Below are positions 59,325 to 64,000 of a stretch of 64,000 nt of DNA, piece after piece. The stretch covers positions 744,001 to 808,000 of the forward strand of contig OZ251224.1 of NCBI GenBank assembly GCA_965240325.2. The letters run 5' to 3'. Below the pieces are notes generated by a model. It worked only from the letters and a program-made list of their open reading frames with translations. It was not told the DNA's origin and did not search any database. The stretch is from Rebecca billardiae RCC1528 (Eukaryota; Protista; Haptophyta). A program made the translations under genes and the position numbers. The number at the start of each line of letters is the position of its first letter. The first letter of the stretch is position 1.

Positions 59325-60611
59325 GTCTAACCACTGTCCACTCCGCCATGCCCTGCTCGCTCGAAGCGTCGAGCACGACCGAGAGCTGGATGGTCGTGGC
59401 GTGAACTGCGGCTTGGGACAGTCCACGATGATCATGATTGGGACACGATCATGTTACATAGGTCGGGATTTTACCAACGAACGACGGGCCGTCGGGCGCG
59501 GGCAGTGCGGAGGCCGCAGCTGCCCGTCGGGTCGAGAGGGCGCCCGTGACCGTGAGGTCCGTCAGTCACGGAGGTCGACGGCCGATCTGGCTGACCAGAC
59601 AGCACGGGTTGCACAGCACCGTTATCCCAGACAGAGGGTGGGAGGGCCGAGGGTGGGCAAACAGTGAACCGCCGCCGCGGAGCTGACGCGGCAGCACGTG
59701 CCAGCTGCTGGACGAGAATGTGATGCCGGACGAGCGACGACGCGGCTGCGGTGCGGCGCTGCACGGCGGAGGCGCTGACAGCAGCAACCTCACCGAGCAG
59801 AGGGGACTACCAAAGGCGTACACCTCATGTGTGCCGAGCTCACAAGAGTGGTCGGAGGAGAGTGTAGCGTGCGGTGTCGTGGGCCCTCTGCCCAGCTCGG
59901 CGCCTTGTGTCATGACGCCCCCGTACCTTGGGCCGAGCCGTGCCGAGGCCAGAAGAGTCGCCTCGGGTGGAACAGGAATCGCCGAGCAAGTCCTGCAGGC
60001 GGTGCCCGGTGCCGACCGGATTGGCTGCCGAAAAGGGGTCCGACCAGGACTGCGCGCGCTGGGCGGCGGGCGCCCCGGGCCCGGCCGGACAGCTGGTTTA
60101 TGATGCCAAGCGAGCCGGATCTTGGTGTCGCTCTTAGACACTCAGTTATTGTGCCAATAACGCCACATACACACACTCAGTTATTGTGCCAATCGCCCCC
60201 CCCCCCCCCCCCCCCCCACATTCACACACACACACATAATTATAATTATAATTAACGACGTGGTATGCAACGGGCAAGCGTCAGAGTCAGCAAGCTGTAG
60301 CAGCAGATCGAGCAGCAGAGACAAACACCAGGATCAGCGCTCCTCGCCGTCGTCCCCCCCCGCTCGTAGTCGATCGCCCATCACTATATTCAGTATTCAC
60401 TCCATCGCCGAGCGGAAGCTCGACGCACCGTCTGGCGTCGACGCGCGCGCGCCACCCGCCTGCACGGTGCACCGCCGGTCAGCACCGCGGGCTGTCCGCG
60501 GTCGGGTCGCGGTGCATAATGATGATTATTACCGCCGAATAAGTACGTTCGATCTGATGTTGCACATCATCAATAATATACAGACATGCCCGTGCTGCGC
60601 TGAGCTGGTGG

Positions 60612-60683
60612 GTGCTCGTGAGGTCGGCCAACTGCTGCACGCAATGTGTGCGCGTGTGCCAGCAGCAGCGTCATTGTGAGCAC
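60612..60683 (-). promoter_or_regulatory. SECIS element (type 2) in the 3' UTR of the SelU-like gene
   Basis: Minus strand: GUGCUC aca AUGAC GCUGCUGCUGGC acac GCGCA cacau UGCGU GCAGCAGUUGGC CGAC cucac GAGCAC. This folds as helix I, a UGA/GA quartet, an ~11-bp helix II and an apical mini-helix. Confidence 0.75.
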
Positions 60684-60744
60684 TCGCTCGGCCGGCGCAG
60701 CCGCATGACGTGCGAAGACGCACGCGTTCGAAGCCGCCCACCGC

Positions 60745-61386
60745 CTACGGGCTTGCGCCGGCCATCTTCAGCACAACATCAAGATCAGCGTGATCACCTG
60801 TGGCCTGGTCAAAGTGCTCGAAGAGCACCTCCTTGCCGCCAAAGACGAACATGCCGCCTTGTTGAAGACCCTGGGAGAGGTCAGGAGGAATCCATGGCTT
60901 CCACCGCGAGAGCGCCTCCTTCAAGTCCTTCGCGCCGTCGGTCTGAAGCCGGCTGAGGATGGCGTACGGCGTAGCCTGATTGAAGAATGTCCGCGACGCC
61001 GACTTGTACAGCCCGAGCGCGTCATAGCACACGTTCTGCGGATCACTGTACAGAGACTCGCGAGGGAAGCCGATGTGGTCGCAGAACTCGACGCCGCGCT
61101 CAGGAGTGCCGATGCCCACCGCTATCAGCCGGACCTGCGCGTCGTCGAGTCGAGGCTTGATGTCACGAAGCTGCATGCCCAGCTCCTGACAGAAAAATCA
61201 TCCGAAGCTGCGGAAGAAGGCCACCACCGCCCGCTCCCCTCCCTCGGCGTCCCACTGCGTTGCGATGTCCACTTGCGAGAGATCAGTCGCACGGTACACC
61301 TGGCGTCCCGCAAGAGCACTATACAGACGGGGCGAAGTGCTCAGAGGCGCGCCAGCTAGGCCGACGCAGGCCGCGATGAGCCACAT
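60745..61386 (-). CDS. Selenoprotein U-like (AhpC/TSA_2, PRXL2/FAM213 family) with Sec at in-frame TGA 61198-61200
   Basis: VVAFFRSFG-TGA-FFCQE is in frame with LIAVGIG, LYSDP...YDALGL and QQGGMFVF..F.H.D..TGDHA. The TGA sits in a UxxC motif and a SECIS lies downstream. Short hydrophobic N-terminus. Confidence 0.88.
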
Positions 61387-61589
61387 CCGAGCCTCAAGCC
61401 TGACGTTGCCGCTGACGGGCGACTTCACGGCCGCGCGGCGGCGCTCAGCAGACGCTTGGTATCGAGTTCGCCGATGATGAGCGCGAACTTTCGAGATGAA
61501 AATCGCCGCGCAGGAAAAAAAATCGTCCCTGCTGACGGGCTGTAACGGTCGGCCGCTGAAAATTGGGCCCAAAAAGGTCAGCACCGACC

Positions 61590-64000
61590 ATGGAGGTTGG
61601 CGGCATGCGCTTCGACCTTGCGCTGGTCGTCGCGCGCAGCGGCTCGCCAGAGGACAAGCGGACCGCACGACTGTATCGCCGTCCCGCGTATAAGAGAATG
61701 ATCACCGCTGGGCTCCAGCTCATCGCCCGCACTGCCCCAGACGGCGAGCACGCGTTTGTGCTCGTGGGCGCGACCGAGGAGCGCCTGCTTGTCGAGGCCG
61801 AACGCCAGAAGCTGCGAAAGCGCGTGCGGACACTTGCAGACAGGCGTGCGGATCCGATGACGGCACACATTGTGCCAAGATCTCTCGAGCGCGAGCGCGG
61901 CGCCTGTGAGCCCTTCTCCGCGAGCGAGCACTACGCGTTTGCGCGTGGACCTCAGGGCCTTTTCACCTCGCTGGAGAGGCAGAGGCTTCTGGCCGGGATC
62001 ATCGAGACGAGCGAGCGCGAGGGCGGCGCGGGCGTCGATCTCGACGGTTCCGTTGCGGATGGCGTCTTCGTCGGGGTGATCGCGCTCGTGGACAACGACG
62101 AGGTGCCCGCGCTGGAGGGCGCTTGGCTGTGCACGCGCGCCGCGCCCTGCTCGACGCTGCCGCCCGCCGTGCCCGTGCACGCGGTGCGCGACTACTTCGG
62201 CGAGAAGTACGCGCTCTACTTCGAGTACCAGCGGCTATACACCGTCTTCCTCGCCTGGCTCTCCGTTGCCGCGCTGCTCGCCACCGCCGTGCAGATCACG
62301 CTCGCGCTCGTGCCAGCCGACGGCACCTTCCACCTCGAGGCTGCGCTCGGCTCGCCGCTGTTTGGCCCGTACTGCCTCGTGCTCGCGGCGTGGGGCACGC
62401 TGCTCGGCGAGATGTGGAAGCGGCGGCAGTCCGAGCTGGCATTCCTCTGGGGCACCACCGACTTCGAGGAGGAGGAGCCCTCGACCGCGCGCTTCGTGCG
62501 CTCGGCCGGGGTCGGTCTCGCGCGCGGGCAGTACACGCCGTCCGGCCAGTTTGTGAGCCTGGCCGATTTGGACTCGGCCGAGTACGTGCCGCACTTCGCC
62601 GAGTCGGAGCAGCGCAGGCGCGCGCTCGCCTCCGCGGCGAGCGTGATCCTGCTCATGGGCTTCATCGTCGCGGTGACCCTCGCGATCGCCGCCATCAAGA
62701 TCATCCTGCAGCGCACGTGCTGCACGGAGTGGGGCGCGGTGTACGGCGCGATTCTCAACTCGGCCTTCATCGCGATGATGGGGTACATCTGGGAGCCGTT
62801 CGCGCGCTGGGTGAACGACCTGGAGATGCACCGCACGAGGACGGCGTACGAGGACCACCTCATCCTCAAGACCTTCGCCTTCCAGTTCGTCAACAACTAC
62901 GCGTCGCTCTACTACATCGCGCTGGTGCAGGGCACGCGCGCGCCGCTGCTCGGGCTGCGCCACGGCGGTGAGCTCGTTCGCGACGAGTGCCCGCGGGGCG
63001 ACGACGGCGAGCCGTCGTGCATGCGCGCCTTCTTCATCCAGCTGGTCACGCTCGTGCTGATGCGCCAGGTGTGGCGGCAGGTCCTGGTCTTCGCGCGCTA
63101 CGCCATTCTGCCGCGCGCGAGCGCCGCGCTCCGACGACGCCGCACCGCCGAGGCAGCCGCCGTGGCCGACGGCGCCGACACCGACGAGGTGACGCGCCAC
63201 TGCGCTCAGCAGCTCGAGCTCCCCGAGCACGGCGGCACCGCGGAGGAGTACGCCGAGATGATCATCCAGTTCGGCTACGTGTCGCTCTTCTCGAGCGTCT
63301 TCCCCTTCGCCGCGTGCCTTTGCCTCGCGACCAACGTGCTCGAGATGCAGACAGACGCGCGCAAGCTCCTGCGGCTGTGCCGAAGGCCGCGCTACCTGGG
63401 CGCAGAGGACATCGGAGTCTTCATGCCGATCCTCTCGTTCCTCTCGTACGCGTCGGTGGTGACGAACGCGCTGCTCGCGTACCTGCTCTCCGAGACGGTC
63501 GTCACAGACATCTTCCCGCACGTGAGCGGCGCGCGGCGCCTCGCCATCATCGTGGGCGCGGAGCACGTGATGCTCGGGCTCAAGCTCGTCCTCGCGCACC
63601 TCGTGCCCGACGCGCCGCGCTGGGTGGTGCACGCGCAGGCGCGGCGCGCGTACGCGCTGCAGCTGCGCGAGGAGCGCGCGTCGGCGGGCGCGTACGCGCA
63701 GATGCGCGCGAGCCAGGCGGAGGCCGACTTCGCCACCGGCGCCGCCATGGGCCCTGGCGGCTCCGCCAAGCACGCCCAGGCGCGCGGCGGCGCGGAGGAC
63801 TTGGAGACCGAGTTTGACGACGACAGCCCAGAGGCGTGGCGGCACTTCCTCGAGGACCCGTTCGATGGTCTCACGCCGCTCGACGAGGACGAGGCGGCGG
63901 GGCTGCTGCGCGATGAGTGGCTCTCGGGCACGCCGCCGCTCGCCCAGCAGGACGAGGCCGTCCCCACGCACGTGGCCAGCAGCGCCGTGCGCGAGCGGCG
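61590..64000 (+). CDS. Anoctamin/TMEM16 family protein (runs off the window; absent from the ORF track)
   Basis: FTSLERQRL, VRDYFGEKYALYF, WKRRQSELAFLWG, LEMHRT..YEDHLILKTFAFQFVNNYASLYYIA, EYAEMIIQFGYVSLFSSVFP, NVLEMQTDARKL...RRP. Confidence 0.94.
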   Translation, partial: MEVGGMRFDLALVVARSGSPEDKRTARLYRRPAYKRMITAGLQLIARTAPDGEHAFVLVGATEERLLVEAERQKLRKRVRTLADRRADPMTAHIVPRSLERERGACEPFSASEHYAFARGPQGLFTSLERQRLLAGIIETSEREGGAGVDLDGSVADGVFVGVIALVDNDEVPALEGAWLCTRAAPCSTLPPAVPVHAVRDYFGEKYALYFEYQRLYTVFLAWLSVAALLATAVQITLALVPADGTFHLEAALGSPLFGPYCLVLAAWGTLLGEMWKRRQSELAFLWGTTDFEEEEPSTARFVRSAGVGLARGQYTPSGQFVSLADLDSAEYVPHFAESEQRRRALASAASVILLMGFIVAVTLAIAAIKIILQRTCCTEWGAVYGAILNSAFIAMMGYIWEPFARWVNDLEMHRTRTAYEDHLILKTFAFQFVNNYASLYYIALVQGTRAPLLGLRHGGELVRDECPRGDDGEPSCMRAFFIQLVTLVLMRQVWRQVLVFARYAILPRASAALRRRRTAEAAAVADGADTDEVTRHCAQQLELPEHGGTAEEYAEMIIQFGYVSLFSSVFPFAACLCLATNVLEMQTDARKLLRLCRRPRYLGAEDIGVFMPILSFLSYASVVTNALLAYLLSETVVTDIFPHVSGARRLAIIVGAEHVMLGLKLVLAHLVPDAPRWVVHAQARRAYALQLREERASAGAYAQMRASQAEADFATGAAMGPGGSAKHAQARGGAEDLETEFDDDSPEAWRHFLEDPFDGLTPLDEDEAAGLLRDEWLSGTPPLAQQDEAVPTHVASSAVRER

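Follow-up and report, generated by a model that had tools for sequence, protein, structure and literature searches.

[quoted passage not shown] We assign this reading, which is built from sequence comparisons, a probability of about 0.88. The gene by itself adds little biology, because SelU is among the commonest algal selenoproteins: SELENOU ranks among the four Sec proteins most widely distributed in algae, with two adjacent copies in the haptophyte Emiliania huxleyi (PMC7539508), and SelU is also recorded from Ostreococcus and Thalassiosira (PMC2375036). Fish, birds and unicellular eukaryotes have the Sec form of the family, mammals a Cys form (PMC2375036, PMC3316567). Unlike the gene family, the A-N-A-C bulge of the SECIS, kept in three related species, is a feature for which we found no description in the literature.

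The coding sequence, for a SelU/PRXL2/AAED1-type selenoprotein of 213 residues, occupies 60745..61386 on the minus strand, from an ATG at 61386-61384 to a TAG at 60747-60745 (642 nt, 213 codons plus the stop), with a TGA at 61200-61198 as codon 63. Reading the frame on the minus strand finds no in-frame ATG upstream of 61386-61384. The open reading frame track divides the gene into two pieces, 61198-61668 and 60745-61176, which the earlier note had taken to be a single frame parted by one TGA and reading FRSFG-U-FFC-QE; the frame bears this out. The pieces are 453 nt apart (3 x 151), the first closes at the TGA, the frame is open from 61197 to the TAG, and the TGA is its sole break, with the junction text VVAFFRSFG-TGA-FFCQELGMQL. 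The codons TGA TTT TTC TGT at 61189..61200 would encode the UxxC redox motif, U-F-F-C, with the Sec codon at 61200-61198. Because the gene aligns without internal gaps to its homologues, the coding sequence is predicted to be complete and to lie in a single exon. Three Logan contigs (L089-L091) carry the identical gene, 100% colinear with the window; their DNA or RNA origin is ambiguous, and we leave them out of the expression evidence. The end of one of them, L090, falls at 60571, some 40 nt beyond the SECIS, in A/T-rich sequence (GTCTGTATATTATTG), and may be a transcript end or a mere assembly break.

Protein searches were run with the N-terminal and C-terminal pieces separately. The stretch of 150 residues that follows the TGA matches the Pfam family AhpC-TSA_2 (PF13911) with an E-value of 2.1e-22 and 80.1 bits, where the curated cut-off is 27, and this thioredoxin-fold domain, at 60805..61173 on the minus strand, covers profile positions 1-113 of 114; the 62-residue N-terminal piece alone has no Pfam match. 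The search of a large protein collection with the C-terminal piece returned 69 relatives, nearly all of 125-160 residues. Among them are an entry from Pavlovales sp. CCMP2436, named by NCBI an AhpC/TSA antioxidant enzyme-domain-containing protein (142 residues), and an NCBI hypothetical protein of Amorphochlora amoebiformis (152 residues). The Pavlovales species is the nearest named one, at 62-64% identity to its deposited protein (P0007) and 65.5% by tblastn (L002). Among named protein types the nearest are plant AAED1 proteins, and the nearest structure is that of PRXL2B; the gene may belong to any of the subfamilies SelU1/PRXL2A, PRXL2B and PRXL2C-AAED1.

The plant AAED1 used as reference, P0064 from Corchorus, is 43% identical over the domain, and its relatives are called 'thioredoxin-like protein AAED1, chloroplastic', 'prostamide/prostaglandin F synthase' or 'peroxiredoxin-like FAM213/AAED1'. 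PRXL2B (PDB 9us9), a prostamide/prostaglandin F synthase and the nearest solved structure, is matched by P0064 at an E-value of 1.8e-8 with the CxxC aligned and by the family profile at 0.005, at low sequence similarity; nothing points to a prostaglandin substrate in the alga. The mammalian PRXL2A, PRXL2B and PRXL2C are Cys paralogues of SelU. The SelU proteins of algae, fish and birds likewise have an AhpC-TSA_2 domain, with Sec as the first residue of a UxxC/CxxC motif after R-x-F-G and a SECIS in the 3' UTR.

The position of the TGA within the family is exact. In pairwise BLASTP the alignment of the N-terminal piece to P0064 stops at residue 108 and that of the C-terminal piece starts at residue 110; between the two lies Cys109, which opens the CxxC motif in RHFGCFCC(WEL), and this is the column to which the TGA belongs. 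The Cys-form homologues, which are longer, read VVAFMRSFGCFFCWEL (P0062) and RHFGCFCCWEL (P0064, Corchorus) there, and RRFGCVVC of PRXL2B in 9us9 aligns with RHFGCFCC of P0064, in agreement with the earlier note, which had placed the TGA on the first Cys of the family motif and had proposed an alignment of homologues at that column. Metagenome contigs were scanned for a peptide pattern taken from the QQGG region near the C-terminus, a procedure independent of the TGA, which gave 80 loci; together with loci from an exact protein look-up, 84 could be scored. All 84 of these homologous algal loci have TGA at the Sec column, and upstream of it they keep RSFG (or RSMG/RSYG) in frame together with about 40 conserved residues. 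The TGA is likewise retained in three culture transcripts: FFRSFG-TGA-PFCQEL in L002 (Pavlovales sp. CCMP2436), FFRSFG-TGA-MFCQEL in L004 (Amorphochlora) and LFRSFG-TGA-PFCQEL in L087, the protein of which is 77% identical to that of the window.

Selenocysteine appears to be the only reasonable reading of the TGA, because the stop persists at the catalytic Cys column while both flanks are selected across several algal lineages. Splicing at TTTTTCTGTCAG, just past the TGA, is made unlikely by indirect arguments: it would remove the invariant UxxC, and the mRNAs of orthologues retain the TGA. In the orthologue L005, a Logan contig 67-68% identical, an intron of about 80 nt (1316-1396) interrupts the N-terminal piece just before the Sec codon. 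A separate observation concerns the Cys-form P0062, which nests inside a clade of Sec forms in two trees, with support of 100/97 and 99/97, a position that suggests a recent Sec-to-Cys conversion.

From this arrangement we infer how Sec would be inserted and how the enzyme would work. The ribosome would read the UGA at 61200-61198 as selenocysteine, directed by the type-2 SECIS at 60683-60612 in the 3' UTR, which presumably would recruit a SECIS-binding protein, the Sec-specific elongation factor and Sec-tRNA. The product would be a thioredoxin-fold, peroxiredoxin-like oxidoreductase with Sec at the attacking position of UxxC, where the Cys homologues have the first Cys of their CxxC. Sec and the Cys of UxxC would cycle between the selenol/thiol and selenenylsulfide states, reducing a peroxide or disulfide, after which a thioredoxin or glutathione system would return the enzyme to its reduced state.

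Where the protein goes depends on its N-terminus. A short hydrophobic N-terminus (MWLIAACVGLAGA) had been described in the earlier note, and the description matches the sequence; the further proposal that this leader could send the protein to the complex plastid is not supported. The leader, MWLIAACVGLAGAP at 61345..61386 on the minus strand, resembles a signal peptide and is unlikely to be a bipartite plastid presequence. Its WLIAACVGLAGA is hydrophobic by eye, and a hydrophobic leader is kept as a feature in relatives. The conserved domain sequence LYSALAGRQVYRATDL, the counterpart of LYSKLKGTQVFRATDL in L002, sets in near residue 21 with only MWLIAACVGLAGAPLSTSPR before it, so that no room is left for a transit peptide: the hydrophobic stretch takes up about 12-14 residues, about 6 residues separate it from the conserved domain, and nothing resembling a transit peptide lies between the two in the window protein. 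With about 12 residues the stretch falls short of the length of a membrane helix and resembles the core of a signal peptide. A candidate cleavage site, AGA/P, fits the -3/-1 rule; the Pro at +1 is unfavourable, and no aromatic residue follows, a further point against plastid routing. The window protein thus differs from plant AAED1 P0064 at this end as well as at the catalytic residue, with Sec and a leader of about 14 hydrophobic residues against Cys and a transit-like N-terminus of about 70 residues.

The short form of the leader is common to all the closest relatives. The close relatives with complete 5' ends (L002, L088 and L008-L022) have leaders of 14-20 residues that abut the domain, in N-terminal pieces of 56-63 residues, and the leader of L005, read by eye across its intron, is likewise short. 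More distant homologues carry S/R-rich or bipartite presequences of 70-170 residues. Since true bipartite leaders are thus recognisable elsewhere in the SelU family, their absence from the window protein can be read as such. Routing to the complex plastid draws what support it has from those same homologues, from the name 'AAED1, chloroplastic' borne by land-plant homologues, and from cell structure: the haptophyte ER lumen, into which a signal peptide suffices to bring a protein, is continuous with the outermost plastid membrane. Against the missing transit-peptide region and the uniform short leaders of the nearest relatives, we regard this routing as improbable. The leader would most likely be an ER/secretory signal peptide or a retained membrane-proximal segment.

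Two groups of algal loci differ in their leaders. Mamiellales-like loci (L033-L039, L051, L055 and L057-L085) have in-frame S/R/A-rich extensions of 50-140 residues, in N-terminal pieces of 100-200 residues, and these extensions look like organelle transit peptides. No chloroplast transit peptide was found for Ostreococcus selenoproteins in an earlier study (PMC8834552), the gene models of which may have lacked the corresponding N-terminal part. In L004 (Amorphochlora), L023, L024 and L030, a signal peptide is followed by a transit-like stretch, as in ...LALCGLAEGF LLPSAP... of L023. Plastid-directed Sec forms of SelU may therefore exist in other algae.

Downstream of the coding sequence, the earlier note had folded by hand a type-2 SECIS with an AUGAC/CGAC core, and a hairpin of this kind is confirmed at 60683-60612 on the minus strand, in the 3' UTR about 520 nt downstream of the UGA. 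Helix I pairs GUGCUC (60683-60678) with GAGCAC (60617-60612) over 6 bp. The core consists of AUGA at 60674-60671, 70 nt past the stop, and GA at 60625-60624. Helix II, with its 5' strand at 60669-60660 and its 3' strand at 60637-60627, has 10 pairs at positions 2-11, beginning past an unpaired C after the AUGA, with one bulged U in the 3' strand. A 5' bulge, G-C-A-C-A-C at 60659-60654, is followed by a mini-stem of 6 pairs (5' strand CACGCG, last pair G-U) and, in the constrained fold, a 7-nt loop. The features expected of a type-2 SECIS are present, namely the AUGA...GA quartet between helices I and II, the mini-stem and the apical loop, and the element shares with canonical type-2 SECIS the quartet, a helix II of about 10 bp, the 5' bulge, the mini-stem and the apical loop. 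It departs from them in the bulged U of helix II and in the 3' flank of the core, C-GA-C, where the consensus is KGAW (PMC3753652). The A-C-A-C of the 5' bulge (A14-C15-A16-C17, 60654..60657, minus strand) lies at the position of the AAR motif. The earlier note was right that ACAC is there and misplaced it in the apical loop; the type-2 structure puts it in the internal bulge.

The rarity of such a hairpin was gauged with a scanner that demanded ATGA...GA, a single hairpin, 9 or more pairs in helix II, and an energy and a helix I that equalled or bettered those of the candidate; these thresholds were taken from the candidate itself, so the scan measures rarity and gives no unbiased P-value. 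On both strands of the 64 kb (128 kb of sequence) it returned one site, the 60683-60612 candidate. In the 1 kb past the stop there is no other ATGA-cored structure; a CTGA-cored hairpin at 60482-60405 was set aside for its wrong core and its poor, almost missing, helix I. In orthologous mRNAs that carry the TGA, the UTR extends 150-250 nt beyond the SECIS.

Profile searches are less favourable. A search of 60300-61000 against Rfam at E<=10 gave no match to a SECIS family (SECIS_1), a silence that is uninformative because the same search, run as a control on ten homologue loci, missed seven of eight canonical homologue SECIS and found SECIS_1 in one (L011, 29.6 bits, below the gathering threshold). 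We also built a family covariance model, R1, from 15 canonical homologue SECIS elements. Searched against the whole window, R1 did not find the 60683-60612 element, and it also missed the SECIS of L087 and L002. With filters off, the element was the top hit within 1.4 kb, at 12.3 bits and an E-value of 0.026 with the helix II register shifted by the bulge, and four unrelated places in the window scored 12.1-14.7 bits, as high as the candidate or nearly so, which leaves it within the background of the window. In unconstrained minimum free energy folds the hairpin region has no advantage in stability over shuffles (z = -0.4); in a sequence this GC-rich, that outcome is uninformative.

Comparison with homologues is more telling. 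L087 and L002 have a matching SECIS layout, 59 and 62 nt past their respective stops: AUGA-C is followed by a helix II with 10 pairs (positions 2-11), and a bulge of 3-4 nt, a mini-stem and C-GA are present as well. Pair tables were indexed from the AUGA; a MAFFT alignment of the four closest elements displaced the AUGA of the window. When the window, L087 and L002 are compared, five positions of helix II differ in their bases and yet remain paired. Position 2 is G-C in the window, G-U in L087 and U-A in L002; in the same order, position 4 is U-G, C-G and U-A, position 5 is G-U, A-U and G-C, position 7 is U-A, U-A and A-U, and position 10 is U-A, U-A and C-G. Across 15 other, more distant homologue SECIS, nine of the ten helix II pairs show compensatory changes. 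A maximum-likelihood tree, from which 16 long-branch or near-duplicate rows were left out, makes the window protein sister to L087 (99/97) and joins L002 with L088 (96/89), the deeper order being without resolution; in a tree without the window row, L088, L087 and L002 are joined at 98/90. The orthologues that share the variant are probably pavlovophyte.

Almost all of the approximately 21 other homologue SECIS candidates have AA(A), mostly as AAAC or AAC, 12-17 nt past the AUGA. The canonical SECIS of L005, for example, has CCCAAC and lies 71 nt past the stop. The reading of ACAC as standing in place of the usual AA(A), already made in the earlier note, is upheld, and relatives are alike: ACAC is found in L002 and AGAC in L087, the middle adenine being exchanged in all three, and a fourth element, that of L042, is also without AA. 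The alternative CC is absent from the bulge in the window and in L087, and an unpaired AAR or CC motif 11-14 nt past the core is absent from the window element and from those of L087 and L002 alike. Conserved bases of the SECIS bulge are typically adenines, with cytosines in a few cases (PMC3753652), and the SECIS of SelM and SelO, which carry CC for AA, also depart from AAR (PMC3753652, PMC2919729); the A-C-A-C of the window is neither. Nor does it resemble SelU SECIS at large, from which the window element differs in having neither AA nor CC. A different variation, in the base before the core, is seen among Mamiellales-like loci, where L033 has GUGA and the near-identical SECIS of L035 and L039 have AUGA. 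The GUGA of L033 echoes a habit known from Ostreococcus SECIS, a G before the quartet (PMC2375036).

Whether the A-N-A-C bulge is a working natural replacement of the 'essential' AAR motif, kept across pavlovophyte SelU orthologues, seems to us evenly balanced. If it is, the Sec-insertion machinery of the lineage tolerates loss of the second adenine, and SECIS-first searches that require AA or CC under-count the selenoproteome of the lineage. The other course would be that the gene encodes a true selenoprotein for which the 60683-60612 hairpin is a poor SECIS or not a working one, with the real element elsewhere or Sec insertion inefficient. The AAR motif, which the hairpin lacks, has been described as essential to Sec incorporation (PMC2919729), classical search patterns demand NTGA..AA..GA or the same with ..CC.. 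(PMC2375036), and both the low R1 score and the silence of Rfam point the same way. The last of these, however, carries no weight given its failure on canonical elements, the 1 kb past the stop offers no other structure to take over the function, and the same AA-less architecture stands at an equal distance in two other species, with TGA, intact frame and compensatory pairs. A defective or misidentified hairpin is on these grounds very unlikely. Search tools and textbooks treat AA or CC as required; as a hairpin free of this motif in three related species, the element offers a natural test case for the function of the motif, and it cautions that selenoproteins of the lineage may escape pattern-based surveys.

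Public annotation of this family is affected by the TGA itself. About 60 homologues of 140-150 residues begin directly past the TGA column, many of them as MFCQEL..., which is the typical footprint of a selenoprotein shortened by gene callers. The deposited proteins of Pavlovales sp. CCMP2436 (L001/L002) and Amorphochlora amoebiformis (L003/L004) are misannotated selenoproteins of this kind, lacking the N-terminal third and the catalytic Sec; with the PF13911 match, their lengths of 142 and 152 residues agree with the proposal in the earlier note of a hidden SelU/PRXL2-like selenoprotein with a UxxC motif, of a kind that gene predictors commonly miss. That gene callers and the NCBI annotation of relatives give the downstream piece only is also what would be expected if the TGA were a genuine stop, leaving a pseudogene or two small ORFs with a 143-residue downstream product or nothing, a reading we find scarcely tenable, as a truncated product would be without the catalytic UxxC and without the fold's first strand, the N-terminal piece is kept in frame in 84 loci from several algal lineages, and the TGA falls exactly at the catalytic Cys column of a gene with a SECIS. 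Reading the TGA as Sec corrects the annotation of the window gene and of its deposited relatives, recorded until now without the catalytic Sec and the first third of the fold.

On the other side of the SelU gene, an anoctamin gene (PF04547) is called on the plus strand, with a product of about 938 residues that runs off the end of the window. Its start lies some 220 nt from the SelU ATG on the upstream side, with 61386-61605 between them, and the two genes form a divergent pair with a short common intergenic region.
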